Assembly: GCA_964188305.1 (NCBI GenBank)
Contig: OZ076885.1
Length of the DNA stretch: 64,000 bases
Direction: 5' to 3' (one strand)
DNA from: Podarcis bocagei
Taxonomy: Eukaryota
The position numbers were made by a program, and so were the translations under genes. The notes under the pieces were generated by a model that was not told the DNA's origin, did no database searches, and saw only the letters and a program-made list of their open reading frames with translations. Positions 4,501 through 27,422 of this stretch are shown here, in pieces (positions within the stretch are counted from its first letter, which is position 1; every line of letters begins with the position of its first letter).

Positions 4501-7112
4501 TGTTTTTAATTCCAGTACCAAAGAAGTGTCAGAAGGCTCGTGAACACTTTGGTACTGTTAGAACACAGTTGGCCTCTCTGAAAAACAAGTTCCCTGCAGA
4601 TCAATATTACAGGTTAGTAAATGTCCACTTTCCTCCTGCCTATTGTGGTCTTTTTTATAATATTTTATTCTTTTTTCCATATAGAAAGTTACATTTGTTA
4701 CTGAGCAATTTTAAACCAATCATTTTAATATGGATGGCTATGATTTATTTCCACTGTTGGAGGCAGTATGCTTCAGCATACCAGTTACTAGGAATCACAA
4801 GCGGGGCGGATGCTATTGTACCACCACAAGGATAGGATTTAGGACTAGATGGGCATTTTGTCGGATCCAGCAGGAGTCTTCTGTTTAAAGTGCCAGGAAT
4901 CACTTTCTCTTTCCCCCCCATGCAGATTTAATGAACATTGGAGATTTGTGTTACAACGTTTGGTGTTCTTAGCAGCATTTGTTGTCTACTTGGAGACAGA
5001 AACCTTAGTGACTCGGGAAGCTGCTACAGAAATACTTGGAAGTAAGGAATTGTTTTTCCACTTAAACACAATGACTTTTGGCTTTAACAAGGCTCCCTAA
5101 GAAATTCAGTAAAATGTTAACCTAAATTGGCACATCAGAAAGCTTCTACGTCACTTTCATTCTAAAACCTTTTGACGTAGTTTGACGGTGAAATAAAGAC
5201 TAGACCTCTGCTTCAGCTCTGCCAAGGTTCCTTTTTTAACTGAAAAAATTAGTAACTGTTAGTAAAAAAAAGGAGTCCATATATGCACTGCTCGAGAGCT
5301 ATGAGTTGGCAGAGTTGCAGGCTCCCTGGAAAGGTAGAAAGTCCACAGTGAAAGACAGGGGAATGTGGGAAGATTAGGTGTACACATTAATTGTATGAAG
5401 CTTCTATACATTCTTATTTACTTTGAAGAAGCCACACTTGTATTCAGTGAGGCTTACTAAATGTTTAGGATTACAGCTCTACTCCAGCAGTGTGGACTCT
5501 AAATGGCAGCTACTCATGAGGATCTTGGGCAGAGGTTTTCCCCATGAGCCCTGCTACCTGAAAATCCTTTTAACTAGAGATGCTAGGGACTGATCCTGGG
5601 ACCTTCTGCATGTAAATAATGTGGTCGGCCACTGTGCTTTGGATTTGGGGCTAAGATATGTAACCCTACAATCCTTCCTAGAGTCTGAGATTAACATCCA
5701 AGGTACTTCTCTGTGTGCACCCACCAAGAGATGTCAGAGAGTGGCAATGAGGGAATGGGCCTTTTCAGTGGTAACCTCAGTTAGAGGATACTCTCCCCAG
5801 GGAAACTCACCTGACACTGGCTTTGTCCTCTTTCAGGCACTAGGTGAAGACATTTTTATTCTCCCAGGCATTTGGACAGCAGCACTGATATTGGAACTTT
5901 TGGTGGCTACCAGGGTATACATCCTGTGTGAAGGGCGTGGATGCTTTGTGCTTTTTCAGATTACTTTTTCTTTGAACACTTTTAGTATTTTATATTTGAA
6001 TTGTTTTTGAATCGATCGGTGTAATTAACTAACCATTAACCTAAAAGGAAGGCCTAACCTGAATTGGCACTCCTTTCATTTTGGAGTCTTCTAACCCTGA
6101 TGATTTGTATTATCAGAGTTGAATCCAAATCCGTTCATTCTTTTTGCAGTTGAATCTGAAAGAGAGAAAGGCTTTCACCTGGACATTGAGGATTACCTCT
6201 CTGGGGTGTTGACTCTGGCTAGTGAGCTGGTAAGTAGAGAGTATTGAGAAGTTTTAGAACTAATGCAGCATTACTTACCTAGTTGGACTGAAAGTAATAT
6301 CCAGAGCCTTGCGTGGACAAAACTAGAGGTTACAAACAGTGGTACCTCGCAAGACGAAAAACGCGCAAGATGAAAGAGTTTTCCGTTTTTTGAGTTGTTC
6401 CGCAAGACGAATTTCCCTATGGGCTTGCTTCGCAAGACAAAACGTCTTGCGAGTTCTTGCGAGTTTGTTTCCTTTTTCTTAAAGCCGCTAAGCTGTTAAT
6501 AGCCGCTAAGCCGCTAATAGCTGTGCTTCGCAAGACGAAAAAAACGCAAGACGAAGAGACTCGCGGAACAGATTAATTTCGTTTTGCGAGGCACTACCAT
6601 GGCTCTTTCTTTAATGAAGTTGCTAGTTGCCCTTTTTCTGCAAAGGGAGGCTTATGGTTGCATATGACTCTACTACTAGTAAAGGTTCGCAAGATTGAGG
6701 CTTCTTCATCAAATATGCTCTAAAAGCCAGTATAATTTATTCTCTGGAAGGAAGACAAAGTGCTGAGTACCCTGTTCAGATGTTAATACTGTTGTGGGCC
6801 TCCAGTAAGGCCTACCTAGCCCGATTTGGTCTGTGCACGTCTGCTTATCTTGCACCATTCTGCTTTCTTCCATAGGCTAGGTTGGCAGTGAACAGTGTCA
6901 CAGCTGGAGACTACGCCCGTCCCCTCCGCATCTCTGCTTTTATCAATGAGTTGGATTCCGGATTCCGCCTTCTCAACCTGAAGAATGACTCCCTGAGGAA
7001 GCGCTACGATGGCCTCAAGTACGATGTCAAGAAAATAGAGGAGGTGGTTTATGACCTGTCAATCCGAGGGCTCAACAAGGACTCAATTGCTAATGCTGGT
7101 GGGGAGAAATAG
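1273..7112 (+). CDS. TSN: Translin (TB-RBP; C3PO subunit), 229 aa; join(1273-1338,3007-3100,4516-4612,4926-5041,6150-6229,6876-7112)
   Basis: Spliced translation MSVSEMFIALQGVLTADQDIREEIRKVVQALEQTAREILTVLQGVHQ...PADQYYRFNEHWRFVLQRLVFLAAFVVYLETETLVTRE...GFHLDIEDYLSGVLTLASELARLAVNSVTAGDYARPLRISAFINELDSGFRLLNLKNDSLRKRYDGLKYDVKKIEEVVYDLSIRG is clearly translin. All introns are GT-AG, and exon lengths 66+94+97+116+80+237 sum to 690 nt. Confidence 0.98.
2061..2895. mobile_element. Non-autonomous hAT (Charlie-type) DNA transposon in TSN intron 1
   Basis: Perfect 15-bp TIRs CAGTGTTTCCCAACC...GGTTGGGAAACACTG. Perfect 8-bp TSD GTCTAGAA at 2053-2060 and 2896-2903; NTCTAGAN is the typical Charlie target. 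No transposase ORF. Confidence 0.92.
3007..3100 (+). CDS. TSN: TSN coding exon 2
   Basis: tttacag|GAGATCAGG; encodes EIRKVVQALEQTAREILTVLQGVHQGSGFQD; donor A|gtaggt. Confidence 0.97.
4516..4612 (+). CDS. TSN: TSN coding exon 3
   Basis: ttccag|TACCA; encodes IPKKCQKAREHFGTVRTQLASLKNKFPADQYYR; donor AG|gttagt. Confidence 0.97.
4758..4885 (+). mobile_element. CR1 LINE 3'-end fragment
   Basis: ggaggcagtatgctt...ataccagtt...ggactagatgggc...gatccagcagg...tcttct; the same motif recurs at 13441-13590 and 23470-23637. Confidence 0.6.
4926..5041 (+). CDS. TSN: TSN coding exon 4
   Basis: tgcag|ATTTAAT; encodes FNEHWRFVLQRLVFLAAFVVYLETETLVTREAATEILG; donor A|gtaagg. Confidence 0.97.
5700..5875 (+). 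mobile_element. L2-type LINE 3' fragment
   Basis: ...gggccttttcagtggt...ggtgaagacatttttattctcccaggcattt, recognised as a squamate L2 3' end. Confidence 0.5.
6150..6229 (+). CDS. TSN: TSN coding exon 5
   Basis: tttttgcag|TTGAA; encodes IESEREKGFHLDIEDYLSGVLTLASEL; donor CTG|gtaagt. Confidence 0.97.
6337..6598. mobile_element. Tc1/mariner (Tigger/pogo-like) MITE in TSN intron 5
   Basis: Left TIR CAGTGGTACCTCGCAAGACGAA, degenerate right TIR TTCGTTTTGCGAGGCACTAC; internal reiterated CGCAAGACGAA motifs in both orientations. Confidence 0.75.
6876..7112 (+). CDS. TSN: TSN coding exon 6 (last, to TAG)
   Basis: ttcttccatag|GCTAGG; encodes ARLAVNSVTAGDY...RGLNKDSIANAGGEK*. Confidence 0.97.
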   Translation, partial: ARLAVNSVTAGDYARPLRISAFINELDSGFRLLNLKNDSLRKRYDGLKYDVKKIEEVVYDLSIRGLNKDSIANAGGEK

Positions 7113-8488: not shown

Positions 8489-8932
8489 AGACACTGTTCT
8501 TTAATATTGTGCTTCTGTGATTTTGTTTTGTATGTTTCTTACAAGCTTGCACCCTGTAATTCACAATAACTTGTTTAGTATACAGGTGTCATATTTTCTT
8601 CATTTTAACAAAAACCCCTTCTTTCAAGACACTGCGATTCTACAGCGCCCATTTTGGGAGGAAGGCTATGATAAAGGGCTCACAACTGGCGCAGAAAATC
8701 TTGCTAAACAATATTCTTACAGTTCTTTTCCTGTCGGCTATAGAATAGAAAAGTGCTGCCACATATTTTGTTCTCTAGTATTCTACAGAGTTCTTTTTTA
8801 TTATTATTCTCATGTGTCACTAGGATAGGAGTGATCTGGTATGGAAAACAAAAAGAGAAGTTAATTAAAGTGCAAGGAAACATAATTATTAAAACATTTT
8901 ATGTTAATCTACAATAATGTAACGGATTCCTT

Positions 8933-8938
8933 TTTAAT
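8933..8938 (-). terminator. Candidate polyadenylation signal of the RhoGEF gene (ATTAAA)
   Basis: ATTAAA on - strand with a U-rich tract downstream; alternative - strand AATAAA sites at 9367-9372 and 8797-8802. Confidence 0.3.
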
Positions 8939-10669
8939 TAAAATTTTGAAATACACTAGATTACATCATTTAAATAATCACAAACTAGAAGAGGTAATTG
9001 AGCCTTGTTAACAGAAGCGTATTTCAGAACGATTTCTGATGTTAAGACATTCCTTGGATTTCTACAATGGGTTTTTAACCATTTACAAACAAATCCAGTG
9101 ATCCGTAAAGGGAGAGAGTATTGCTTATCCACAGGATTATACAGGTAATCTGGAATGTTTGTGAGTGAACTCTGAATATATTTCGGCTTCCTTTTCCATT
9201 TACGTGTTACATGCATTCAGTGCAAAGTAAAACTCGGTAAACTGGTTCCTACGTGGGCACGAGGGTAGAAGTAGAAAACTGATAAGCTAACAAAAGATGG
9301 ATGAATTAAATGTTTCCTGGGAGAGCAAGCTGAAATGAGGCTAATTATACTGTCTAAACATTCTCCTTTATTGTGTTAATACTGCTCTAAATTTGACTGG
9401 ATGTTGCCTAATGCTGTTATAATATATGCACAATGAAACCAGTCTATCATATATGGTCAAAATTCCTTTTTCCCAGCACAATCATGCAGTGTCAGACATC
9501 TCACACGCCTATCTGATCCCCACATTATTAACAAGATTAGCTCAATATTTTCTCTCTAGAGACCTGCTCCTCATGATCCGGTGCCAATAACCCCTAATTA
9601 CCATAGAGGAAGACATCCCAAGTAGGCCACAAATCTGAAGGGCCCGCCCTGCCCCCCTTGAGCAAGTCTTCACAGGGTAAAGCCTATTTGCCCTCAGACA
9701 GACAACACACATTTTGTTGTCTTCACTGTTATACCTATTTACAAAATGTGCAAAAGATTCCCATTACCCAGAATCTAGATCTCACTCCTCTTACCACTTA
9801 CGAGCCTCCTCTGATTTCTCCTTAGGCCAAGTTGTGCTGAAGTGATTATTTTGGCTAGCCAGATTAACTCCTTATGTTCCTACAGCTCATGCTTAACTTT
9901 CACTCCACACTTAACAGGCAGTCTTCAAACTAACAACACTCTTCCTTATCGCTACCAGCTCAGTCAGTTACACTAAGCAGAGGGTTGGCCACCAATCTCC
10001 TCTCAAGATGACAGCCTCTTTTTGACAGTTTGTGTTCCATGGGGCCCTCACTTTATCACCTCATCAGGCAATGCCTCTCAAAATGGGGAATGTGGCCTCC
10101 AGAAGGGTTTGTGGGGCACCTACAAGAGAGGGGGCAGCATTTTGTAAGTCTTATTGATAAGTAGGTCTATAAAGCTTTCCACAATCTGAGTGTCTACCTC
10201 ATGGATTTGCTGACGGAAGGGTGGAATGGTCAGTCACAGACTGCTGTGAGTTACCTGAAGCTAGAGACCATGGACTGTGGGAGCAGCTGAGAAGAGGAGT
10301 AGCGGAGGTAGGGGAGCAACTGTGTGTGTAGGAACCACTCAGTTGGGAGCAAAGCAGACCTAAAGGTTATAGGAGCCAGGTAGCTACACCCAATGAGGTT
10401 TCTAAGTTGGGTTGTATGGAAGATCTAACAAGCTTAAAAACGGGGCACATTTTTTCCTTCAATTTGAGAAACACTTATTTAAGTGGTACTCGTCACAAAT
10501 GAATTCTCAGTAGAAAACGACATCGTTACGGATAGCTCCAATGCTAATTGGCCAGGTGAAGTTCATCCTTGGTGCAATTTTTGTTGAAAAGGAGATCTTC
10601 AACCCAAAGCAGGTTGTGAGGAAATTTCTGAGCTTACTTAGCCAAGTCATTTTGCAGTCAGCGATCCTT

Positions 10670-11465
10670 TCATGACCTATTGTGCGATGCGCTTATCATG
10701 ATGTTGGGCAAGGCGTTGCGCCGCTTCTTCCAGGAGCCCAGCTCCCGAGAGTACCTCCGTATCTGCCTGAACCAGTGGTGAGTCCGTGCCTTGTCTCCAT
10801 CTCGGAACACAAAAGACTCCCGCCTGATCTCAAGGAGTTCAAACGTGTCGTCGCAGTCGGGATCCACAGAGACCACACAGTTGCTGAGTCTCAAGGGCTC
10901 CCTGAGCAAGCTGAACTTCCCATTGTTTTTGTCCCTAATCAGTACCAATACTGCATCTTTCACAGGCCCTGGCTCTCCGGGTTCAAAGCTAGACTCAGAG
11001 GCGCGTCTGATGTTGACCATGAGGAGCACTTGCATGTTCTGGAATTTTAAGGTCTTGCTGCCCTTTTTGACCCACTGCCCATCAGGAGGCTGGGCCAGCT
11101 GCAAGGGGCCTTCCATCACAAAGCGGGTTTCTTCCCGCAGCCAGCCCACAGTCTTGATAGCGGTTTCCCTCATTTCAATGTTAATGACCTCCCTGTTCTT
11201 CTTGCTGTCCTGGCGGAAGGAACGCAAAGTCCACGAGTTTCCTTCCTGCTTGGTCTTCATGTTTATGTGCTCCAGGTGGGACTCAATGCGGCTTTTGGCC
11301 TCCCTCAGGCTGCTGTGATCTGGGTGGTACTCAGTGGTGGCTTTGATGATGCGGCTCAGCAGAAGTGGGTACTTGGTGACTCTCTGTAGTGGAGCCATGA
11401 GGAAGGACCGCAGATTCATGCGGCGAAGAGCTGTGTTGTCGTTCTGGGAAACATTGAGGAAAATC
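10670..11465 (-). CDS. RhoGEF gene last exon: DH C-terminus, PH-like domain and tail
   Basis: Acceptor cctccctgcag|G; encodes IFLNVSQNDNTALRRMNLRSFLMAPLQRVTKYPLLL...WKKRRNALPNIMISASHNRS*. Confidence 0.94.
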
Positions 11466-14400
11466 CTGCAGGGAGGTCAAAAAATAATGTATTTTGTAAA
11501 CAGGTACAGGAAAACAGAAAAGCTTACACCGAGGCTCTTGTTCTTACATACACATGAGGCATTGTTATCTTTAATTAATTAACATTTACAAAGTAATTAT
11601 GACTTAAGATCCCAGAATATTATTGATATATACTGCTTTCCTGCAAAACCATTTACTTGATTTGCTAGACTCAGGAACATTTTTTATTTTTTTTCCGTTC
11701 TCAGGCTTTGTTTAATGCATCACTAAGGTAAGGTTCAATAGACTTGCTGTTGATATCTTAGCTGTTAAATATTACTAAATTTATGCAAGTGTAGACACAG
11801 GGCAGTATCTAGCATATTAGTTGCAATAGTGCAGGGAATGTTTTCACCCTCTCCTTGTCCTATGTGTCCTCTGTACCCTAAATCTGTTCTGAGGGTTCCC
11901 CCAGCCATCTAGAACGGATTTGGGGAGGAGGCTGGAGGTGCAGGGAGCACTCAGACACTGTACTGGGAATGTCACAGGTGGATGGGCACGGCCTTTCTAT
12001 TGTTCTGATAAAGCCCCAGTTGGTGATGTGCCTTTGTTGGTAAACTCCTCAGCTCTAGTTGATGCCATGTATCCTGGTGTAAGTGCCTGGTCATTGATGA
12101 ACCCCCCCCCCTCCCCAAAGCATACTTGCTCCAAGGGGTGTTGCTAAGTACTTAAAAGTATGGGCTCATAGACAAACTTTTTGCATATCTGAATTAATAT
12201 GTACAGATGCAAATTCAGAATTTTAATATTACAGACAATAAGCCCATTGGACACCCCAAATATGTTCAATTAACTTGCACCCCACTCCAGATCTGTCCCC
12301 TCTTCAATTAAATAACTCTCATTTTCCCAAAAGATCCTTCTCCAAATCCATTTAATCCCCTTACAATTGCCCCCATTCATTATTATCTCTAGGTGCAATC
12401 ATTTCAAATTCATTTATTTCCACAAATTTGTATCTTACTAACCCAGATGACATGCCCCTCCAACACACACCCAGTTAATCTCTTGAATACATTACCTACC
12501 CATAAATGCTCAGTACATTTAGGAAAAGATATGGAGTCTGTGCCCCAAGGCATATACTCCCTACCAGGCCTGTGCAAGGGGGCGTGGACAGCTGGGTACA
12601 CTTGCCCTGGGCCTTGGAGGGCTAGGATGACTGGGGGGCTCCACCAGGGGCCTGCAGGACTTATGGTGTCATGTCAAGAACAAGACTTCCATGCTGGGCT
12701 TCATACAAGCTCTGAATGGTCCTGCTACCAACCCAAGATTAAGAGGTCTCCTCACCTGAGTAACTCCTTCTCTTTTTCCAGTGCATTGAGCATGTTCACT
12801 GAAGATGACTGCTGGAGGCAGTATGTCTGGAAGGCAGGCAGCATATTGACAAATTCCAGGAATATCTCACCGATGCACACAGTCATGAGGTCATCATCGC
12901 CCTGCCGACACACAACACACAAGGCAATGCATCAGCCAGAGACGTGGAGGTACCAGAGGCCATTAAAAGCCACCTGCCTAATATTCAATTGTGGCAAATG
13001 TGCTGGAGTGGAGCTGGTGACATTGGTGTCTCTGCAGTTTATGGAGCTGAGGTGTGTCAGGGCAGCAACAAAGGCAGGGCTGTGTGGACATACCAGCAGG
13101 AGGAACAGATTGGTGTCCACACAGCCCTGACCGCATCACCGCCCTGCCCCGTCCCAGCCCTGCCCAGGTAATATGCAACCCAGACCTACCACCTTGACTG
13201 CAACTGCTAATATAATTACAAGGTGATCTTGGACTACACGTTAGCAAAACACCTCATGATAGCTGTTTCAACAGTGAGTTTCTATTGGCCACGTTTCCCA
13301 TAAACTACAGCTTGAATGCATTCTGAATAATTAAGCTCTTTCCGCACTGAAAACAAGCAAAAGTGCTACACGTTTTTCCTTGAACCTAAACCAGGAACTG
13401 CTAACTTCTGCACTCTATTCTCCAAACAGTGGCCCAAGCCCAGTCACTAGGAATCACAAGGGAGGAAAATGCTGTTATACTCAGCTTCTGTTTGTGAGCT
13501 TCCTATGGGCATCTCATTGGCCACTGTGAGGACAAGATGGTAGGTGAGATGGGCCTTTGGTTTGATCTAGCAGGGATCTTTTAATGGTTTTCTACTGACT
13601 CTGGTAGAACATTAAAAGTGTATGCAAATACAATGCAAAAGTGATTAATCTCAGCTTGACAACCATGTTGTTATTCCCTTCCATGTCTTTTAATGATTTA
13701 CTCTACTGATGTATATTTTTAGAATCTGTTACATTTTGATTCCTAATTAAAAAAAGATAAAAGTATTTCACAAAAGACTATTGCAAGACCATTCCCCCTT
13801 TTTTGCCAGCATGAGGTGCTGTAGCACAGAGGCTCAGTTATGACACAGAGTACTACACTATTGCTGAAACAAAAACAAACATTCATAATTAAGGAAACAT
13901 GCCATCCAACTTAAATGGTTTGCTGAAATCCATTAGCAGACACCATCCTTGTAAGTTAAACTGGATTTCAGTTGAATTTCATGGATTAAATCTGCACTTT
14001 TGAGGTTTTGAAACTGGAGACTGTACCACCCTATTCCCCCCAAAATTTCAACCCCATATATGTCAAAATAGAACGCTCAACATCTGAACCCTTTAAACTT
14101 ACTGCATTAAAATTTGCATGCATGCACACAGATTTCTACGAAGTAGTGCAATGCAAATTTTGCATATATGATTTTGAGTTCTAAATTAATTTTAAAAATT
14201 GTGACTGGCAGAGCTGGAAATGACTCATAGGATCTCTTTTACGCCTTTGGTCTTATTCCCGAGCTCTTCTATTATCCTTGATTTCCCTCCTTGGCTCCCC
14301 AGCATCTTAAAAAGTTCAACTACATCTCTGACGCAGTGGATAGCATTATCACATTTCCCCATTTTGGATGATTATATCTTGGCCTAAAAAGACACAAACC

Positions 14401-17400
14401 TTTTGCCCGCTTGCACCACCAGCATGCAGTCCCTGGAAGGTCAGCTACGAGGAAATACAACCCTTGAACTGAAAAAGGTTCCTTGACCCTCGTCCAGGCT
14501 GGCTGGGAGTGACCCCCAAGGGTTTCACACAAGACTCTTTTCCAACCCTACCTGGGAGATGCCAGAGATCAAACCTTGAACCTTTGTATATAAAACATGA
14601 CCTCCGACACCAGGAAGAATCCCTTTCCTGCCTACTTGTCCATATACCCAGTACTGTCTTCTCCGATGGCCCTCTAAGGCAGAGGGTTTTCACTGCACCT
14701 GCTATCTGATCCTTCCCCTTCCCTCCCTTTTAAAAATGGCTAAGTCAGAGACTGAACCTGGAACTTTCTGCATGAAAAGCATGTGTTCTCCTGCTGAGCT
14801 CTGGCCCTTCCCCAAGGCGATTATCCGGCCTTCAAAATAATACTCTCTCCCGCATTTGACTTGCAAAGTTCAACAACAGGGCGCAGAGCCGTGTGCCGTA
14901 CACAGGGTGCTAGTCTGTAATAATGAACCATCAAGAACTGCTGTTCCAGCAAATTATAAGTAACCTTGAGTACGTTCAAGAAAGAGCCAGTTTGGAGCGT
15001 GGCTCAAATAACACTTAAAGGATTTAACTAGCCTTGCGCCTGTTCTTGGCCACCGGCAATTGTTGGCAGCCAAAGCCGCTTTTAATTGCTCTCCTGTGGG
15101 CAAGATGGGCTTCTTTGAATGCTGCTGTAAAAATTAATTTCATGGTAAAAGGGTGTTTTGTTTCTTTCAGAGCCCTTAATAAAGCACAGGCCATAATATA
15201 AATACACAGCGGCGTGTAAATGCCATTCGCTTTGCTGAGGTGCTAGCGCAACCGTCTGCCTGCCAGCATTGTTTTCCTTCAGCCAATGGAAATGCGGTAA
15301 TATTTGGAACTGATGGTAGGCCTCGCTGCGCAGCAAACTGAAAGTGCTAAAGGGGCAATTCCACATGTCATAAAGCTAGCCCCATACTGGTCTGTTCAGG
15401 AGCACATGGGGCAAAGGGACTCACGGGGTAAGGCAGCCTTCCCCAGCCTGGTGCCTGCCAGATGTTTTGGACTACAACTCCCATCACCCCTTACCATTGG
15501 ACATGCTGGCTGGGGCTGATGGGAGCTGTAGTCCAACAACACCTAGAGGGCACCAGGCTGGGGGAGGTTAGCAAAGGGATGCATGCATCGCAGGGGGCTT
15601 TCTTAGGTGATTCTATGATTCTACAAGGCACAAAGGATTTTTGAGATGCTTATCCACCAAGTGGTCTTGAATTCACGTAACTTGTCAATCACAAAGAAAC
15701 ACAGGCGACTTATGGTAGACTGGGGGCATCCAATCAGAGCTGAGGCCTTCTTCCCTAATCTAGAGGCAGATGTTTTCTCACACAATTGAAATGACAAAAA
15801 AATAATTAAAAAGTTGGTACCCTTTGGAACAAGAGCACAGGGAAGCTGCCTTATACCAAGCCAGACCAACTAGCTCAGTACTGTCTTCTTTGACTGGTAG
15901 CATCTCTCCCAGCCCTACCTACACGCAATGCATAGGCTCTTACACTCAGCAATGGCCCCTTCCCTCTTTCAGCAGCTAAAATGAGTCAGACAGAGGCATA
16001 CCCATTCTCAATTCCCTTACCTGCTCATTAGGCATTGTGCCTTTCTAATGAGTGGCACAACCTTTGAGTGCCATAGTAACAAAGCTACAGTGGCAAAAGT
16101 AGCTCATTATAACTGCACAGGGAAAGGGAGAAGAAATCTGAGACCACACACGCACACACTACCTGCTCAAAGGCCTGCTCAATCTCTTCTTGAAGGTACT
16201 CCAGGAAGTTTTCGTTGAGGTCAATGAGCTCCTGTATGTTGCCGAAAACCACCAGCAGCTGGTCCTGTGTTAGCAGGCCAGCAGCTTGCATGGGGAGGTA
16301 GAACTCTTCCTTGATGATGCGCAGGTCCTCCCCGTAGCTGGTTTCAGTGTTGACAAACTCCAGCACCGACTCCTTCCGCTCCGTCCGGCACTTCAGGCAC
16401 TTCTCGCAGAGGATGGCCCGCCTCTTGTTCTGGTTCTGGACATCCGTCTCCAGCGGGAAGTGTCTGCCCCCACAGTCGGTGCAAGGCTGGTGGGCCTCCC
16501 AGGCCTGCAGAGATGCCAGCGTCTCCGACGCCTTGCTCCTCCACTTCCTACTCAGCACCTGGCTGATGCCGCTGTCTGCCCGCTCCATCTCAGCTGACCT
16601 CATCCTTGGCACCCCTCCACTGCTGGCATCGGCACTGTCCCTCTCGTCACTCCCGCCAACAATGCCGCTGTCGGCGCTGAGACTGCTGACGTTGCTCCAG
16701 CGGTGTTTGGAACGAAAGGAGCCGCCCAGAATGCCGTGGTTCTCATCAACGTTGCTGCTGTAGTTGAGGTTGGCTTTCGTCAGCACTGGGCCTGAGCAGG
16801 GGGGGGAAATAAAATAAATCTATTTGTGGAACCTTCCCATTGTTTTGTTCCTCAGCCCTGTTCATCCAACAGTAAAAAGCTTGTCCTGTTTTGTTGTGTT
16901 TTTCTCCTTGTGACCAGGAAGGATTCTGCAAAGTACCTGAATACAGAGACAGGGAGAACCTAGTTCTTACTGATATGTTGCTACATTCTGGCATTTTCAT
17001 ACATACATAAAGATTTTCTTTTTCTTCATGCTAAGAAAAGCTTGACCTGATCGCTAAGCATGCTCTTAAAGGTACAGTAGCAGGTCATCTTTAAAAAAAA
17101 AAAAAAGACAGAAACCCTCCTTGTATTGTACTGGTTAAATTGTCCATCTAGCCTAATGTTATCTCCAAAGCCTTGGTCAAGGTTTCCTCAGCCTTGCCTG
17201 CTGAGATCCTTTAAATAGACCTAGACAACTCTTGACCCACCAATATATCCCGCTGGCTACATTGCTTGCTGGGTGCTTCTATATATTTGCAACCCCCCCA
17301 AAAGTAGAGGTTTATCAAATTCCTGGTGGGCCACAATGCACAACTGTGTTTAGTCTCATGGGCCATAAGCTAGCAGGTCTACTTGACAATATGCAAAGAA

Positions 17401-20400
17401 CATATTCTGCTTCTGAGTTACACTTCTCTCTTTAATTCAACAGCTAGGGAAGGATGCTCTCATTTAGAATTTGGCTCAGGTGTGTTGGAAGGAACAAGCC
17501 TGTCCTAATGAACTACGCAAAGAACAAGCGGAAGCCACCTATTGACGGCTCCATCTGCTCAGTATACTTGCAGAACAATTGTTCCAGGTTCTACTCACCT
17601 TTTGCTATATCATGCATGAAGTCAAAGAAAGCACTAGATTGAAGCTTAGCTCATGACACTGCCTTACCTTTGCATACCCCCTTTCCTGCATTTGCCAAGA
17701 GCCAGTTTGGTCCTGTATGGGCCCAATCCAGGCTATTGGCTGTTGCTATGAATTGTACAGACAGAAAGCACACTGGAGGAGGAGCTGCTACTGTATTCCC
17801 CCTCCTCTGGAGGGACCCTGGAATAAGAGGCTACAGCCGGCTGCAAACATAATCCACGGCTGTTGAGTGGGAGATGTTTGGAGGCTATCTCTCTGAATGA
17901 TGGCTGCTAACCTAATGTCAAAACACATCCAGAACTATGAGTGACATGGACAGACCCTGCAAATCACACACAAAGCAAAAGGCAAGGGGGGCATACTGGA
18001 GTCTCTCTCTTGCCGGCGCTTCTGGGCATGCTGCCGTGCTGCTGCAGCAATCTTCAGCTCCAGTTGTTTTCTCTTCACAGCATCTGTTGGCATCGGATCA
18101 CTGAAATGAGGCCGCAGCCGACACTCCCGTTGAGCTTTGGTGCAGTCCGAAGTTTCGTAGGAGATGTCAGAACTTGATCGGCGGCAGTTGGGGCTGGAGC
18201 TCTGGAAGAAAAGCAAGGGGTGGTTGTGGGGAGAAGTTTCTACTAAACAATATATAAGATACTTAAATAAGGTAAAGGTAAAGGTACCCCTGACCATTAG
18301 GTCCAGTCAGGACCGACTCTAGGGTTGTGGCGCTCATCTCGCTTTATTGGCCGAGGGAGCCAGCATACAGCTTCCGGGTCATGTGGCCAGCATGACTAAG
18401 TCACTTCTGGCGAACCAGAGCAGTGCATGGAAACACCGTTTACCTTCCCACCAGAGTGGTACCTATTTATCTACTTGCACTTTGACGTACTTTCGAACTG
18501 CTAGGTTGGCAGGAGCAGGGACCGAGCAACGGGAGCTCACCCCGTCGTGGGGATTCGAACCGCCAACCTTCTGATCGGCAAGTCCTAGACTCTGTGGTTT
18601 AACCCACAGCGCCACCCACATCCCTTGAAGATACTTAAATATACATGGCCAAATCCGACACCCAGCGCCCACTACCTCTAAAACCGTTGTTTCTCCTCAT
18701 ACCTTTCTGGGGGGGGGGCAACATCCTCACTCAAGAAAGGAAGCAAAATATGAGCTGTTAGTGTTACATTGAACACATGTTCATGAAATCTGTGTGCAGC
18801 TGTTTAAATATGCACATAGTTTAATATTGGGGTGTCAGCAAGCAACATGTCTATTTTATCGGGCTGTATGGGAGAGTTGGCAGGATGGGCAACCATATGT
18901 GGACAGTGTATCGCAGCAGCAGCTTTACTCCAATTAAGATGGCAACAGCTCTCTTTCCCCACCAACCACTGTTTGCAATCCAAACCCAATGATTTGGATT
19001 TGTAAGTGCTAGACTGAGGATGAAACGGGCATTCCTCCCCATGCCTTTCCTCACACGCTTTCTGAAGGCTGGAACTTTATGTCTATACTACATAGTTAAA
19101 CAACTTTCCAACTGGTTTCATTGTTTTGGGTCATGACCAAGCGATCAAGAAACACTTTTCCGTGAAGAATCTACACAGATTACTCTGAGCACCCTCACGC
19201 AGCTGTGGTTCACCCAAAGCTCCAGTTGGGTGAAGCTAGGATAATAAAACAACTCTCAACCCAATTTTAAAATATTGTGGGCCCGATCCAGCTAACATTA
19301 TGTGAACAGGTCCTATTGAAAGCAATGGAGAAAGTTAATCTCCAGTTCCATTGCTTTCAACGGTATTTTGGGCCACTCCCGATATCATTCTTATTGTGCA
19401 CATGTGATGATTCATATTCATGCTGGTATCGGGGCGGTTATCCACAATCCCGCTTTCAGTCGTTTGCACCTGTCATCGTTCTGAGGTAAACATACTTTTC
19501 AATTGGTGCATGTCCTGTAGCTTCCTGTTGAAACCCTGTAACTTTTCATATCTCAAATGTCTCAGGTTTTTTGTTTTGTCCTGCATTTGTTTTGCTACAG
19601 AGCAAGATTATCCCTCCAGACAGGAATCATGCAGTAACACTGGGGAAACATTTGCAGAACAACTGATAAAGCAGAATAATCATAGCTGTCAACTTTTCCC
19701 TTTTCTTGCGAGGAATCCTATTCGGAATAAGGGAATTTCCCTTAAAAAAAAGGGAAACGTTGACAGCTATGAGAATAACGTGTGGACAGTCCAGCGTCAA
19801 TCCAACACAATTGCACTAATACTGCATGAATGACACACTATGGAATACACCTCCAAAATGCACCAGTCTGGAGGGGCCCTTAGTCACATGTAACTTTAGC
19901 TAGATTTGTACGGTAGTGTTGATGTGCCTTAGGTATCTTCATTCATTAGCTTGTTCCTCGCAGCCACCCAGAAGCAGGAAGGGTGAGATGGGGTGCGGGA
20001 AAACAGGAGAGAGAGGGGGGGGGAGAGAGAGGTAGAAGAAGGGAGGGAGGAAAAAGCATGGAGAGAAGAGCCAGAAGAGTATTGGTGACAGGGGTGCAGA
20101 ATAGCTGAGAGCTGTCATAGAAAGTAAAGTTACAGCTCCCTGACCCAACACTTCTGAAACCCCTTTCTGTTCCAGGCCACACAACTCACGGTGGGTTGAT
20201 GCGAGTCCTCCACAAAAGTGAGGTCATCCTTCTTAAGTTCACAGAATCCTTTGGAGGGAGTCTCAGGAGTAGCATCGCCACTGCAGCTGTGAAAAAAGGG
20301 ACACCACCCCAATTAATGTCCTGCACAAACAGCAGTCCAGAGCCAACTCCATGCGTTGAGAGGAAAATGCATCTTGAAAGCTACAGTGTATTATTCTACA

Positions 20401-23400
20401 GGTCTTCTACCTTGCGGAGTCAAAAGCACCTCATATCTTCTTTCTCTTACATATGCCATTCCATAAATGCACTTCTACTGATGCAGCGGATAATAGGGTT
20501 GTGTGTGTGGCTTTTTTAATGAAACATGTTTGTAAATTTAAAGGGTTGCCCCGCCTAATATTTCTGTATAAAAGCAGCATCTAAAGTGCATGAAATCTTT
20601 AAGCTTCTTGTCCCTCTTAGTTGTTTTATTTGCACTAAGATAGGAGACAACTTTCTGTTCTGTCATCAGAAAGAAAGTGCTCCCCTAAATTATCAGATAC
20701 CATGAATAATTTCTCATTCATAAATGATGAGGAAACTGTATATCCAAGCCCCAAGGGAGGGAAGAGAGAGGACAAAACCTAGTCACACCCACATATAGGA
20801 TTAGCGGTGGCAGAAACAATATTTAGCATTTACGTAGCTCACTTGAAGTGTTCACTATACTCGGCACACAAATATGAATGGGTGAAGGGGTTTAAGACTT
20901 CCAGGTGTCAATCACACACAAAAATGCATGCTTTGCTTATTTGATATATTGCATTTGGGGATCTTGTGAATCATCAGGAGACTGCAGTATCCTTCTGCCT
21001 GTGTTAAAGAACTGTATACCATTCTAGATAGTTGCCCTCTAGGCAACCCTTCATACAAAAATGCAAAATACATCTTTTAAAATAAATATTCCCTGTGTGG
21101 CCCATCACACATTTCCTCACAAATATACAGTGAATCTTTGGTTACTATGCTGCTTCATATAGCATTTTTAAAATAAAAAAATTACATCATCTAACAAAAC
21201 AACAACAGAGTAACTATACCAACTCTGGATAGTGACACTGGATAATATCTATATACTGTACATATTATTCCTGTGGCTTGGCTCACTTTCATGAATCACT
21301 TTGTAGTATCTGATATGAAGACAGCTCAGAGGTGTGTGACTTGTTCACTCCTGCTTTCAGCTTGTGGCACAGTGTTCTGAATTGATCTGTAAGGAGCTGG
21401 TGCATGGATAATCCTGCCTTGTGGGGAAGAAAAGGGAGGTTGGAGTCCATGCCAGTTCGGTGTTCTCCAACTCTATGGCTCTGCCTAACTGGGATGACAG
21501 CGCTTTCTGCCCAACAATGTTATACACACCGTGGACAAAATCCCAGTTTAGAATGCAGCTAGCTTGTTCTATTTCTCAACTGACGCTGGTTTAGAAGGAA
21601 ATGCATCAAAATGCAGTAAAAGTATCTCCCCGCTTATGCATGTTCGACTCTCGCGTGGCCATGTATGTACTCGGTGCAGGGAAACAATTAAATAAATAGA
21701 TTTAAACTTCAAAAAGGCAAGAAAAAGGCAAAAGCAGTCCTAAAAGAGCACAAGAACTGCAAAAATGGTGTGAAAAGAGCAGAAAAAAATGCTAGCAATC
21801 CCAGGAGCCTTTGCAACTGCAATCTCATGAGCCTTTGCACCAACCTTTGAGTTGAGTTTGAGAAAGGAGGTTTGGAGGGAGCTATTGTGGTGGAGTTTGG
21901 CATGTTTTGGGTGGCGCTTGGCGGTGAATGTGTTTACAAGATTTAGATGTGGCTAATATTCTGTGTGCCCTGCTTCCCAAACCAGCTGTGGAAGTACACT
22001 GGATGCAGAATAAACAGAACTGTGAACACCACCTCACTTTTCCAGAGAAAGAGAGTAGGTAGGTATTTCAGGTGATATGCAAAATGGCAAATTATATTAA
22101 AACTACTGGGAATTTTCCTTTGTAGGAAGTTATTTCTCTTTATATTCAAGAAATCATATACACACAGTTCCATATTTATTGGATACTGGAGTGCTCTTAT
22201 CTGTACATTAGTACTCATTCTATATATTCTCTCAACTGCCTCTTAGCCAACTGTTTTTGCATCTATTCTATCTCTTTCTCCCAGGTGAGAGTGATTCTCC
22301 CATATGGTATTAGAGCAAGGAATTTATGTAATGGAAGGTTTCTGGATGGGGAAAAATGTACATAATGGTACGGCAACTATTTGTGGCTGAGGTGGTTCAA
22401 TCAGAGATGTGCCTAATTCGAATGAAGCTAGGATGATCAGTATATGAGGTGGGTGTTGTTTTTGTTTCTGCTAGACATGGTAACTGGCTTCAGTTTTTGG
22501 AGAAGGGTAGTCCATTTGCCTGCTTCACTGGAAAAAAAAATTGTTCCCAAGGCTCCACCCTGTTTACTACCTCACTGCTGCAGATCCCAAATGGTCCAAC
22601 TTCATCTTTGATTTTATTATGGAACCATCTTTATCCACCTCTTAAATCAATGAGCAATACTTCAATCTTGAGGCACCCTGCCATCTGGCATTCCTTCATC
22701 GTCTCTACAAGCTGGGCCTTTCTGTTATGGCTGAATTTTTCCTCTTCTCACTTTCCCCACATCATCCTTGACATTGGCTGCTGTTTTGACCTTGAAAGAA
22801 AACAATATTTTGCCCAGCAACTTTATGCACTTTAATATGCTCAAATCCAAATATTTTCCTTTTTTATTTTTTTAACCTTGGGACTTTTCTTTCCTTAACT
22901 GCTTTCTCTGTCATCGTAAAATTTTTGCCTGTCTTTATTTAATTCCTTATATACTGGATGCTCTGATTTCCTGCCCATTCACTGACATGGCTATTAATAA
23001 TGCCCTAGGTTTTCATCTTTCTCTGTCGTCAGATTCCTCAGAAAGCCTGGTAAACACAATTCACAATCAAAAGGTAAAACAGGTAATAAATCAGGATCTC
23101 CTTTCAATCATGCTTTCAACCATTTCTTTTTTGCTCAAGTAAAAAAAAATGCTCTACAATTCATGACAGGCTTTAGATTATTCCATGAAGATAAAACACT
23201 ACAAATTAGAGGCTCAGAATTAAAACATTAAGCTGCTTATAAATGTGCTGAGTAAATTACATTTGGAAGAAAGTTCAGAAATAAGGGGCAGATGTGTTGC
23301 ATGTAATTCAAACACACACACAAAATTCCAGCAGGATCTTAAGAAGCCAATGACAAGAATAACCCAGGAAGTCTTCCACTTCACATGAATGAACGCTAAC

Positions 23401-26400
23401 TTAATCTGAAATGATAAAATTGTCATGGGTGAAAAGGGTATCAATAGCCAGTAGTTATGAACGCTATATTACCTCCAGTATGCCTTTCACTACCAGTTGC
23501 TGGACAGCATAAGTGCTATTGCACTCATGTCCTGCTTGTGGGCTTCTTGTAGGCATCTGGGTGGCCACTGTGGTAACAGGATGGTGGACCAAATGGACCT
23601 TTGGTCTGATCCAGCAGTGCTCTTCTTATGATTTTATGTGCTGAAAGGATGCTGCTCCATGTAAACAATTGACTGTATGCAGCAGCTCACCTTATGGACT
23701 GGCCTCACACCAGATCTCCCCATGTTATTCATATTACTGACAGGTTTTCTTACAACAAGCACTCGGTCAAATCATGCGGCATGGGGGAAATCCACATGGC
23801 AAGGCAAGGCACATGTATACCTGGCCCCATGGAACAACTGCCACAAGGACCCTATTTCAAGCAGCCTCAACACCACATGTTGCTGAAGTGAACCTAAGGC
23901 TTGCAACCCTGTCATTTCACTGCCAAATCCTGAGAATATGTTGCCTCTCAAATCTAGTGACACCCCTGCCGCTGAGCCAGAAACTCCCATCGTCAAAACC
24001 AGATCCTCCATGAGATTGCTAAAGCTCTGGAAGAAAATGACAGCTGGGTTTTGAGCAAATAATGGCTCCCAGTTTTACAATTTCAAAGGGAAACTGTTTG
24101 GTCTCATAAGCTTTTGACTCAAAGTCATGAGAAGCTTGGCAACTGGTTGAAATGACCGTTGTGTTTTTCATAGAAATGAATTAATTTCAGAAAGCTCTGA
24201 ATGTAAGCAAACTGAGCTTGATAAAGTCCATCTATGGCAAAAGGGATGTTGTGAACAAAAGAAAATAACACTGTGCGATGGATCTCAGTCCCATACTTAG
24301 AGAACCCATGGCTTATAAGAGCAGAGGCTGGCTCACCTGAGCAGGAGGAGGTGTTTTACTGCACTTGGGACAATGGAATCTCTATGTAGGTCAGACAAGA
24401 GAGCATCAATTTTTTTAGACCAAAGGGCTGCATTTTCTCAGCCTCCAAGCTCCTGTGTGGTTTTTAATGTTTGAATACCCCTTTCATTTACTTTTGCTGC
24501 TCTGATGGGTTTCACCAGGCTGTATATTATGTATTTTCTGTTGCGTTTATAGTTTTCTTGTTCTCATTCTTGTTTGTTACTTTTATTTTCAAATTTTGTA
24601 TTGCCCCATGTTTGCACATTGATAAATAAGATTTTCTGGTTTATTGTGAACTGCTTCTTTCCCCTCCTAGCTCCAGAAAGAGAAACTAGGAAGCCTTGGC
24701 TTCCTAGTATATCTGAATCAGGGTTCATGGTTTGTTGATCCGTAACAAACAAACAAACAAACAAACAAACAAACCATAATTACAAGCAAACTTTAAGCCA
24801 TAGTTGTTGGCCTATGACATGTGGACTTGTTAGGGAGCAACAAATCATGATTCCTAGCTTGGATGTAATGGGAAGCCAAGACTTCCTGGTTTGTTCATCG
24901 TGCCTGGGGGGAATGAGGAGGGAGTGATTGAGCATGCTGCTCATTTACAATAAACCACAATCTGCCAGAAAATCTGACTTATCATGATATGTGGATGTAT
25001 ATGTGATAGAGCATAGCATAAATCTTTATATATAAACCAATAAGGGTGCCATTCAGTCACCCCGTATGACCCTAAAATAGTGAATCCTAAGCTTATGGTT
25101 CCAACAAGGGAATTCAGTCTCTGCCTTGAACTCATCATGGAAACTATCCCTCATAAGATTTGTGTTGTTACGTTGCCCCAAATACACACTGCAGGAAATC
25201 TACCAATATATTAGGTCTCCATAACCATTGATAGCTTACAAAGGGCAGCATTTTTTTAATTATTTGCCCAAGTCACCTGAAAGTCAGTTTTCACAGGCTT
25301 TAATATTATGTTTTGTGTCACCTCCATTCACATGACTGACATTTCCTCCAACCTGCTGCCCAAAGTCAATAATTAACCCACCCTGTGAAGATCTAGATGT
25401 GTGTCAATGAACAAGGAGGACCAGTCATTTCAGTGGCTCAAGAAACAGAGCAAACACCCCCCCCCACGAGGCAGAGGGAGTCCCCACCCTCTCCACAATC
25501 CCCAAGACTACCTTTCTAGATTGTTAGGCAAACTCCTTCCTGACATCAGATATAGCAGTTAGTTAAAAACCCCAGCTTCATCAGTTCTCCCAAAGTGGCA
25601 TATGGGAAAATGTCTGCACAAATTAACACAGCCCCAACACTGTCTCTTTCCCTACAGCTGCCTGATACCTCAAAGAAAGGAACTCCCCACAGGTCAAAAG
25701 GGGGAAAGCTATTAATGGCGTAAGTGTCTGTGCAAATTATTACACCTCTGCAGCATACTGATTCAGCAAGGAAATTCTATAAATTACTTAATACAGCTAA
25801 ATTTGAAAGTGCATTTCTAAGTACCCTAAAACTGAAATTGCTCTCAAGAACTCTAACAGAGTCGGTTACCTCTTCTTAATGAGGTCCAGTGCAGAGCCTA
25901 TAAATTCATCCTTCATTTTCTGCAGCTTAGCTCCATAGCTGGATATATCTGTCGCTTCTAATAGCAATGGGCAGCAAGAAGACTGGTTTTCAGGCACCAC
26001 TGGCTGTCCAGCATGGTGGAGGACTTCGCTTAGTTGTCTTGCATTCAATCCCTGAGTCTCCCCTTCAGCAAAAGTTTTCCCTCCCTCCTCCCTAAGGGCT
26101 GCAGCAGACTGTAGAGGTGGTCTTGGAATTGGACTCGAACAAATGGGGACCGGGATTCTATCTGAAGTTGGCACCTCATAGCGCTTGTCCCTAGCCATAG
26201 GCATGTTCATCAGGCAGAAGCTCCTGTCCCATGTAGATGAATTATCTTGATAGCCAACAAGGCCAGAAGTGCTCTGGGTATTTTCATGAAACACATCATC
26301 ATAATAATCTATCGTTGCAACCGTTTCTTTGGCAAGAACTTGCTGGGCACCTGAACAAGGGTTCTGGTTTCTTTTTTCTTCCAACTTTTGGGTTCCTTCC

Positions 26401-27422
26401 TTCACATCTTTTGTCACTTCACCGCTGCCACCGAGAAAACATGTCTCCTTGATTCTCATCCGCTTGAACTCTTCAAAAGTTGGAATGTAGAGTCTCTCTT
26501 TGAAGTCCCCTTTTTTGCTCAGCTCCAAAATCCTTTTGGTGTCTCCTTCCCCCTCATATCCCTTTAAGGATCCAGTCGTTTGGGACTTGACCATGTCCTG
26601 GCCATCACTGGCACAATGGAGAGTCAAGTTGGGCGAGCTGTTCTGTCTCCTGATCTGCAATCTTCTCCGAGCTTCTTGCTTGATGTCTTCTGGGTTTGTT
26701 AGTCGGCGAGAAAAGCAAGGCCGATGACTCCCCAGAGCTGTCCATGGCCCGTGAGTGAGGGTGGCATGCTGCACAAATATGGTGCAACAGTTCACCGAAC
26801 AACCGTTCTTATATTGCTGGCATGCCCGGCATTCAGAGCATTCCCTTGGAACCAGATCATTCAAGGAAACCTGAGGTCTGAGAGGCTTGCAAATCTCTGC
26901 AGCTTTACTACTGTGAATTCGAAGTTTTTCCTTTAGGGTTTTTTTGGCATCCCCATCCACGGAGGAGAAAAGCCACGGAGGCACTTTGGCACAAGGAGGA
27001 AGGGCGACGTCTCGCGCTGCAGGTGGAATTCTGTCCAACGCGAGAGGGAAGTGTCGGCAACATTCAGGTGAGCTGGGGGATGGAGTACCTTCTGCAGAAC
27101 ACTTTGACCAATGAGCTGTGCCTTTGTAACGGACGACAAATTCTTTGTCTACATTTCCATAGCGGGGATGGCAATGCGGATCAGCACCCGTGGCCCAATG
27201 TAGATTCTCCACACTTCGATACAGATGTGCCCCTGCAGTGCTGTCTGCTTTGCTCACAGGATTAAAGTCCCCAGTAAAAATGCGAGCGTCCAAGTTCTTC
27301 AGAGGATGCATGCTGCTAACTGAGAAATCCTTTAAGCCATGTTGTGCGTACAGCTGATTATTCTGGCAGCTCAAAATTACCCGACAGTGTTCCTGCCTCT
27401 CATCAACGCTGATGTATGTCAT
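10670..27422 (-). CDS. Uncharacterised Dbl-family Rho guanine nucleotide exchange factor (DH + PH-like), about 1141 aa; complement(join(25870-27422,20190-20286,17997-18201,16163-16791,12756-12901,10670-11465))
   Basis: Six GT-AG exons with matching phases (2,0,1,0,2) total 3426 nt with no internal stop. DH hallmarks: ERKESVLEFVNTETSYGEDL (CR1), FGNIQELIDLN, YCLQQ, LRSFLMAPLQRVTKYPLLL (CR3), LEHIN. A PH-like region follows (FVMEGPL...SFVFRDGDKARTHHWFRQI). The start ATG at 27422 is inferred as the first in-frame ATG after an upstream TGA. Confidence 0.88.
12756..12901 (-). CDS. RhoGEF gene exon, middle of the DH domain
   Basis: Acceptor tcggcag|GGC, donor AG|gtgagg; encodes GDDDLMTVCIGEIFLEFVNMLPAFQTYCLQQSSSVNMLNALEKEKELLR. 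Not shown in the ORF track. Confidence 0.92.
13441..13590 (+). mobile_element. CR1 LINE 3'-end fragment
   Basis: Homologous to 23470-23637 (gggcatct..ttggccactgtgag...gatggg.ctttggt.tgatc.agcagg). Confidence 0.6.
15434..15570. mobile_element. Palindromic hAT-derived MITE (ggactacaactcccatc...gatgggagctgtagtcc family)
   Basis: Inverted arms; same family as 57988-58123. Confidence 0.75.
16163..16791 (-). CDS. RhoGEF gene exon with Cys cluster and N-terminal half of the DH domain
   Basis: Acceptor cccctgctcag|GC, donor CAG|gtagtg; encodes PCTDC...LCEKC...ERKESVLEFVNTETSYGEDLRIIKEEFYLPM...EIEQAFEQ. Confidence 0.93.
17997..18201 (-). CDS. RhoGEF gene internal exon (SSSPNCRRSSSD...KRKQLELKIAAAARQHAQKRRQERDS)
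   Basis: Acceptor cttttcttccag|AGC, donor A|gtatgc; phases 0/1. Confidence 0.85.
18270..18624 (-). mobile_element. Sauria SINE, full length
   Basis: On - strand: tRNA-like head GGGATGTGGGTGGCGCTGTGGGTTAAACC...GGTTCGAATCCC, then body, then (ACCTTT)n tail. Perfect 14-bp TSD AAGATACTTAAATA at 18256-18269 and 18628-18641. Confidence 0.93.
19681..19771. mobile_element. 91-bp hAT-type MITE
   Basis: TIRs CATAGCTGTCAAC...GTTGACAGCTATG; 8-bp TSD AGAATAAT/AGAATAAC. Confidence 0.8.
20190..20286 (-). CDS. RhoGEF gene internal exon (CSGDATPETPSKGFCELKKDDLTFVEDSHQPT)
   Basis: Acceptor ttttttcacag|C, donor ACC|gtgagt; phases 2/0 bridge the neighbouring exons exactly. Confidence 0.78.
23470..23637 (+). 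mobile_element. CR1 LINE 3'-end fragment
   Basis: ...ggcatctgggtggccactgtgg.aacaggatg.tggacc.aatggacctttggtctgatccagcagtgctcttcttatg. Confidence 0.65.
24744..24774. repeat. (AAAC)n microsatellite
   Basis: Seven perfect AAAC units plus a partial unit. Confidence 0.95.
25870..27422 (-). CDS. RhoGEF gene, large first coding exon (517 codons, mostly low-complexity N-terminus)
   Basis: Inside the 554-codon ORF. Ends ...GSALDLIKK(S) at donor AG|gtaacc (phase 2), matching the phase-2 acceptor at 20286. Likely acceptor tttcttctttgcatcatcag| at 27614. Confidence 0.78.

Follow-up and report, generated by a model that had tools for sequence, protein, structure and literature searches.

The closest described systems are Drosophila RhoGEF64C (Gef64C; Bashaw et al., 2001) and its vertebrate counterpart, ARHGEF49. 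The DH domain of the fly protein catalyzes nucleotide exchange on Rho more than on Rac and not on Cdc42, and the full-length protein induces stress fibres in Swiss 3T3 cells, which is blocked by C3 transferase (PMC2199320). In the same study, the axon-crossing gain-of-function phenotype was suppressed by dominant-negative RhoA, not by dominant-negative Rac1 or Cdc42, and was abolished by a missense allele at the C-terminus of the protein, the exact position of which is absent from the paper text (PMC2199320). RhoGEF64C is apical in the invaginating cells of the posterior spiracle, where Rho1 activity is proposed (review, PMC3892749), and renal stellate cells depend on it for their shape and actin architecture (PMC9231607). 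The vertebrate protein was described as GEF64C, a relative of Drosophila RhoGEF64C and number 72 among the vertebrate Dbl RhoGEFs, present from fishes to marsupials and absent from platypus, with its absence from placentals being a specific loss (Fort and Blangy, 2017; PMC5499878). Here, we analyze a gene in a stretch of 64,000 nucleotides of Podarcis bocagei DNA (contig OZ076885.1 of assembly GCA_964188305.1; hereafter the window), which occupies 10670-27422 of the minus strand, tail-to-tail with TSN. The locus is very probably orthologous to ARHGEF49, known as si:dkey-91i10.2 in zebrafish and as GEF64C in Fort and Blangy (2017), and would be the lacertid form of the only vertebrate gene that corresponds to Drosophila RhoGEF64C. 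It encodes a protein of 1141 amino acids (aa) with a long and mostly disordered N-terminus that contains several conserved islands, a four-cysteine motif, a catalytically complete DH domain, a PH-like domain and a short conserved tail of basic and hydrophobic character, and the fly protein suggests that its exchange activity would be directed mainly at RhoA-type GTPases.

The gene comprises six coding exons (E1-E6; Table 1) with a total of 3426 nucleotides, which correspond to 1141 codons and a stop, as read from the sequence and checked by script. The internal splice sites of all six exons are AG acceptors and GT donors, and the phases are compatible at each junction. The DH domain begins near 16363 within E4 and runs to ~11261 in E6, where the PH-like domain occupies ~11128-10739; the motif EQ|GDDDL reads across the E4/E5 junction and ELLR|IFLNVSQNDNTALRRMNL across the E5/E6 junction. 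The open frame in E1 spans 554 aa, which together with a DH domain split in order over three exons excludes a chance origin. The 1141-aa protein of P. muralis LOC114603832 (P0148) aligns by tblastn to all six exons with identical boundaries, the identities being 98 (over the 517 aa of E1), 89, 100, 93, 100 and 100% for E1 to E6, where the E4 figure includes an alignment overrun past the donor. At the DNA level, the two loci are ~96% identical. The N-termini of the orthologues share the lizard start, MTYI(S/N)(V/I)DERQ, and no Pfam domain was matched in the N-terminal region encoded by E1. E2 lies where the gecko and Podarcis proteins align by tblastn, and its phases join the frame of E1 to that of E3, which is 63-89% identical to the fish, frog and gecko proteins and weakly similar to amphioxus. 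The lizard gene is real and intact. An earlier note on this DNA, made from the letters alone, had described an intact six-exon DH-PH RhoGEF of 3426 nucleotides beside TSN; this description proved accurate to the base, and the AG/GT sites, the frame and the DH motifs were all confirmed.

The orthology is based on search ranking, near-identity to the P. muralis model and shared motifs, together with the published phylogeny and distribution. A search with E1 returned orthologues from geckos, birds, frogs and fish, one of which is named arhgef49. When the full DH-PH orthologue of a frog was used as the query, 354 proteins matched at E ≤1e-10, and the best 120 of these are all from non-mammalian jawed vertebrates. 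They span sharks, bichir, sturgeon, paddlefish, gar, bowfin, teleosts, coelacanth and lungfish, as well as caecilians, salamanders, frogs, turtles, crocodilians, birds, lizards and snakes. The names arhgef49 and si:dkey-91i10.2 are given to the proteins of sharks, gar, bowfin, teleosts and coelacanth, and the orthologues of lungfish, amphibians, turtles, crocodilians, birds and squamates have LOC numbers; 'Rho guanine nucleotide exchange factor 49' and 'uncharacterized protein LOC...' are also among the names in this set. Nothing of substance distinguishes the lizard gene from vertebrate ARHGEF49: P. muralis has the same six-exon structure and protein length, and the proteins from sharks to birds have the same domain order and family motifs.

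The search with E6, which encodes the end of the DH domain, the PH-like domain and the tail, reaches beyond the vertebrates. HMMER returned 1313 matches at E ≤0.001, 72 of them at E ≤1e-30. Vertebrate orthologues rank at the top (65-89% identity) and are followed by proteins of 1100-2600 aa with 38-48% identity, in which the whole query is matched up to their own C-termini; the lower tiers consist mostly of a ~70-residue DH segment common to Dbl proteins, or of short fragments. Cluster look-up of these matches identified Dromiciops gliroides LOC122745940, amphioxus, spider and hoverfly proteins, and Musca RhoGEF64C. No second vertebrate relative of RhoGEF64C was present in the E6 search. In blastp, the last 430 residues of the P. 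muralis protein share 41-48% identity with ten invertebrate members over 388-439 columns (E 1e-88 to 1e-115), and over the last ~420 residues its identity to the named fly RhoGEF64C relatives is 43-48%. By contrast, the sequence matches to solved human Dbl structures do not go beyond E 1e-12, and the structural alignments with them show 15-22% identity. These comparisons point to the RhoGEF64C proteins as the nearest non-vertebrate relatives, far nearer than other Dbl members. Drosophila RhoGEF64C shares the position of the DH-PH region at the extreme C-terminus, the four-cysteine motif, the ERxDSG motif and the tail with the lizard protein; the insect proteins are longer (1.5-2.6 thousand residues) with unrelated low-complexity N-terminal regions, and the N-terminal islands of the vertebrate protein are no more than faintly visible in amphioxus. 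The lizard gene is equated with the published GEF64C on three grounds: it is linked to RhoGEF64C, the two have the same taxonomic pattern, and a second vertebrate relative is lacking among the matches to E6. The earlier note had placed the gene close to an insect RhoGEF family, which turns out to be RhoGEF64C on both the HMMER and the blastp evidence (41-48% identity), and had proposed an ancient bilaterian RhoGEF kept in non-mammalian vertebrates, which agrees with a range from sharks to birds, plus insects, spider and amphioxus. It had also allowed for an automated name, and LOC numbers, si:dkey-91i10.2 and arhgef49 were indeed found; its view of the gene as uncharacterized and unrecognized was mistaken, as the gene had been listed in 2017 as the 72nd vertebrate Dbl member (PMC5499878).

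The predicted protein contains the elements of a Dbl-family exchange factor. The Pfam RhoGEF profile (PF00621) matches the exons in profile order, with profile positions 3-77 in E4 (45.6 bits), 69-109 in the short E5 (19.1 bits) and 129-180 in E6 (51.4 bits), at a cut-off of 27.6, and the P. muralis protein scores 130 bits over residues 762-945, which correspond to the DH domain. At E ≤0.1, the exons and the P. muralis protein match DH models alone (RhoGEF above threshold and Alsin-DH below it), and RhoGEF is the sole domain found by Pfam in the lizard, marsupial and fly proteins. The DH motifs TExxY, QRVTKYPLLL and LEHIN are all found in E4 and E6 of the window. To assess conservation within the family, we use an alignment of 48 members (21 vertebrate and 27 invertebrate), each represented by its last 430 residues. 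The Glu of TExxY (E768) is present in 46 of the 48 members, the other two having gaps; Q904 and R905 of QRVTKYPLLL and the terminal Asn of LEHIN (N945) are present in all 48, and K908 is K or R throughout. With a DH domain above the Pfam gathering score and conserved exchange residues, the protein is predicted to be a Dbl-family RhoGEF, and it carries every feature that a working Dbl exchange factor would require.

An AlphaFold2 model of residues 712-1141 of the P. muralis protein, built on the 48-member alignment, has a mean predicted local distance difference test (pLDDT) score of 80. The DH domain (~93) is followed in the model by a seven-strand β-sandwich (80-90) capped by a C-terminal helix; the confidence is low at the cysteine motif (42-64) and at the tail (45-53). 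The model confirms a DH-PH fold, with a predicted PH-like domain directly after the DH domain. In Foldseek, the best matches are the RhoA-specific DH/PH tandems of PDZ-RhoGEF (ARHGEF11), p115 (ARHGEF1) and NET1, with LARG (ARHGEF12) slightly lower (E ~1e-14 over ~400 columns, 18-22% identity), and Vav1, Tiam1, intersectin, P-Rex1 and Dbs are within two orders of magnitude of these. Unlike the RhoA-specific tandems, the lizard protein has no RGS, PDZ or other accessory domain. A sequence search of solved structures returned generic DH matches only and no near relative.

By analogy with the fly orthologue, ARHGEF49 would catalyze GDP/GTP exchange mainly on RhoA-type GTPases, perhaps on Rac and not on Cdc42, and this exchange would drive local actomyosin contractility, leading to a change in cell shape. 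That RhoA is the main substrate of the vertebrate protein can be held with moderate confidence. The functions that have been demonstrated (Rho-dependent axon attraction, apical constriction and stellate-cell shape) come from the fly only. Several points weigh against this reading of the lizard gene. The specificity assigned here is that of a fly protein with ~44% identity, the isolated DH domain of which also used Rac, and the literature contains no exchange assay or genetics for any vertebrate ARHGEF49, a name that occurs in a single paper, in passing; a literature search for 'dkey-91i10.2' found no occurrence. Pfam does not match a PH domain on the P. muralis protein. The Foldseek ranking among DH/PH tandems is almost flat (8e-15 to 1e-12) and is probably a weak guide to GTPase specificity, and, by sequence, the solved structures that match best belong to a Cdc42 GEF (intersectin) and a Rac GEF (Tiam1). 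Four RNA runs with the same species label, two bulk and two single-cell, were aligned to 10600-16590 with 12% of the bulk reads sampled; the two bulk runs give no coverage of the exons in this interval, and one of the five junctions is seen in RNA of this species.

The alternative that fares best keeps the orthology and takes the vertebrate protein to be chiefly a Rac or Cdc42 GEF, similar to intersectin or Tiam. Among solved structures, intersectin-2 and intersectin-1 are the best matches for the C-terminal part of the DH domain (E 1e-12 to 1e-10), the match covering ~65 residues of the C-terminal helices, including ..HPDHS.L.., at E 1e-12, and Tiam1 is the best for the N-terminal part; in addition, Rac was used by the fly DH domain in vitro and some of the automated names are 'intersectin-2-like'. 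However, the fly genetics and the cell assays indicate Rho and show no activity on Cdc42, RhoA-specific tandems head the structural matches, and the EH and SH3 domains of intersectin are absent from the lizard protein, which makes this alternative rather unlikely.

Returning to an ARHGEF49 that would act mainly on RhoA, two motifs outside the catalytic residues set the family apart. The first (C-x-D-C ... C-x2-C) consists of C722-x2-C725 and C747-x2-C750, and its four cysteines are present in 43-45 of the 48 family members, the exceptions being mostly gaps. It is a candidate zinc knuckle. The second lies in the C-terminal tail, where the family consensus is W[RK][KR]RRNAL[PA]NIMI; all 48 members, from insects to vertebrates, have the W, RR, N, I and M, and the other positions are almost invariant. 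As a regular expression, RRNAL.NIMI matches 41 of the 48, always 4-12 residues from the C-terminus. The tail motif is a hallmark of the whole bilaterian family and not specific to lizards, and it matches the R-R-N-A-hydrophobic core of the PKI pseudosubstrate. Together, the cysteine motif and the C-terminal motif look like shared derived characters of the ARHGEF49/RhoGEF64C family, and both may have been undescribed until now. We infer only from their conservation that they may regulate or localize the exchange activity. A more specific proposal, to which we give little credence, is that both motifs are regulatory modules, so far undescribed, within a RhoGEF that is ordinary in other respects: the tail would dock on or inhibit a basophilic AGC kinase (e.g. 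PKA), or would act as an autoinhibitory latch on the DH-PH unit, and CxxC...CxxC would be a zinc knuckle that places DH helix 1. If this is true, ARHGEF49/RhoGEF64C would tie kinase signalling to Rho activation by a route that placentals gave up. The tail might also serve as a binding site for a partner or for the membrane. The four-cysteine and C-terminal motifs provide concrete handles for mutagenesis.

Transcripts give the gene little support in this species and complete support in a related one. In P. bocagei, the two single-cell runs place few reads on E6 and E5, and three of these reads, with three different starts, join 12756 to 11465, which is the exact E5-E6 junction with GT..AG on the minus strand. 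Of the junctions drawn in the earlier note, E5-E6 is thus borne out in this species, and the other four were not seen there. In a related sauropsid, contigs of 4.3 kb and 4.9 kb, assembled from two public sequencing runs, carry the uninterrupted frame of the 1170-aa orthologue; being far shorter than the 12-29-kb genomic genes, they are interpreted as spliced transcripts. Alignment blocks of these contigs stop at the donor end of E1 and coincide to a few bases with the ends of E3-E6; no block covers E2 of the window. Expression of the RhoGEF in the sampled tissues is low. The lack of exon coverage in the bulk RNA-seq and the handful of single-cell reads would fit a lizard copy that is decaying or silent, en route to loss as in placentals, the open frame being a recent relic, and so would the fast evolution of the marsupial copies, which share 63-66% identity in the C-terminal 430 aa. 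However, the six exons are open with canonical splice sites, spliced reads exist, the C-terminal 430 aa are 97% identical to gecko, the exons for DH-PH match P. muralis at 100% identity despite a DNA divergence of ~4% across the locus, and all catalytic and family-specific residues are retained; a decaying copy is therefore highly improbable, and the intact ARHGEF49 orthologue remains the preferred reading.

Orthologues were found in three mammals, all marsupials and none from Diprotodontia. A search with the Dromiciops protein returned the Sarcophilus and Monodelphis orthologues (79% and 75% identity) and then turtles (46-47%), and no placental or monotreme protein is among the best 120 of the 316 matches. 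At 1005-1065 aa, the marsupial proteins are shorter than those of sauropsids, and their evolution is much faster: over the last 430 residues they share 63-66% identity with lizard, versus 90-92% for bird and turtle. The tail motif is retained in them, as are the cysteines and the catalytic residues. The absence of a mammalian counterpart, as claimed in the earlier note, thus holds for placentals, none of which is in the best 120, and fails for marsupials, three of which keep the gene, so that 'lost in mammals' should read 'lost in placentals'. That a placental, and hence human, orthologue hides under another ARHGEF or PLEKHG name is very unlikely: a few orthologues are labelled 'rho guanine nucleotide exchange factor 17' or 'ARHGEF17-like', but no known human ARHGEF or PLEKHG protein emerged as the orthologue, no placental protein being in the best 120 of either full-length search, the marsupial-seeded one included, and the architecture is unlike that of ARHGEF17. 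The published survey likewise gives none in placentals or platypus (PMC5499878). The gene was already known: it has a symbol (arhgef49), its distribution and placental loss were published in 2017, and a model is annotated in the sister species. Because placentals lack ARHGEF49, work in mouse and in human cells has never addressed it; species in which it could be studied are zebrafish, frog, chick and lizard. It is the one Dbl-family RhoGEF that is under strong constraint in most jawed vertebrates yet missing in placentals, and the remaining interest lies in its vertebrate role and its two conserved motifs.

Three kinds of automated name attached to orthologues were rejected. 'Intersectin-2-like' is not appropriate since Pfam finds no EH, SH3 or C2 domain on the exons or the P. 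muralis protein, and 'myosin-M heavy chain-like' fails as no myosin head matches any exon or that protein. Intersectin carries EH domains and five SH3 domains N-terminal to its DH-PH, and C2 is C-terminal to it. The 'ARHGEF17' and 'ARHGEF17-like' names fail because the defining domains are absent in Pfam. In ARHGEF17, the PH domain is followed by a long C-terminal region, unlike in the lizard protein, which ends seven residues past the tail motif.

Table 1. Coordinates of the RhoGEF exons, the family motifs and the neighbouring features in the window.
Feature	Position	Strand	Description
E1	25870-27422	minus	1553 nucleotides (517 codons + 2 nucleotides); ATG at 27422; long N-terminal region
E2	20190-20286	minus	97 nucleotides; short linker exon, poorly conserved; AG/GT borders
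E3	17997-18201	minus	205 nucleotides; bears conserved block RSSSD...RLRPHFSDPMPTDAVKRKQLELKIAAAAR
E4	16163-16791	minus	629 nucleotides; HRWSNVSS..DSG and ERADSG motifs, four-cysteine motif, first third of DH domain
E5	12756-12901	minus	146 nucleotides; mid DH domain
E6	10670-11465	minus	796 nucleotides with TGA at 10672-10670; last third of DH domain, PH-like domain, C-terminal tail
Four-cysteine motif	16397-16483	minus	C722-x2-C725 ... C747-x2-C750, immediately before DH helix 1
C-terminal motif	10694-10732	minus	W-K-K-R-R-N-A-L-P-N-I-M-I, encoded as WKKRRNALPNIMI; seven residues ahead of stop
Conserved block, probably 3' untranslated region of the RhoGEF	8897-8978	minus	~1.7 kb past stop; 82% identity to 3' end of the 4.9-kb transcript contig
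TSN (translin)	~1270-7112	plus	translin exon frames; convergent with the RhoGEF

The neighbouring gene is the same in distant species. The tail-to-tail pair of TSN and arhgef49 is present in P. muralis and in spotted gar, where a gene for a 229-aa protein with the Pfam Translin domain lies tail-to-tail, 4 kb past arhgef49. The TSN-ARHGEF49 pairing is ancient. The synteny with TSN on which the earlier note had remarked is thus shared with gar and P. muralis; no TSN exon was found within 10 kb downstream of the orthologue in Dromiciops, Monodelphis or basking shark, where the intergenic stretches are longer and distances beyond 10 kb were not covered. The conserved block downstream of the stop codon indicates that the 3' untranslated region of the RhoGEF may reach within ~1.8 kb of the TSN stop, and the convergent 3' untranslated regions may come near to each other or overlap.

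The remaining observations concern the exon borders, the upstream region and the RNA data. Just beyond the donor of E2 (20130-20190, minus strand), read-through gives VSCVAWNRKGFQK... and then a stop, which shows a faint likeness to an extra segment of the bird and frog orthologues (V-MSMATETWENK / AVSMTTQSWQK). The bird and frog proteins are ~29 residues longer than those of squamates at E2, the squamate exon being shorter; squamates seem to use an upstream E2 donor, with the rest of a longer ancestral exon lost. Upstream of the RhoGEF, no long conserved open frame was found at 27600-64000 of the window among frames of ≥95 aa, and a slight rise in G+C at 38-40 kb might mark a CpG-rich promoter or an exon of the 5' untranslated region. 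At 15400-15600, the reads of all four RNA runs pile up 8-29x with loose ends, strand-switch joints and variant letters, and the rest of the intron is empty; this pattern suggests a short interspersed repeat, with transcription at many other sites, rather than an exon of the RhoGEF. Finally, 38-84% of the sampled words of E1 are present in fourteen small runs (28-121 million letters, 2017-2022) with six organism labels, a pattern that fits target-capture or phylogenomic libraries, and E1 may already be in use as a squamate marker.

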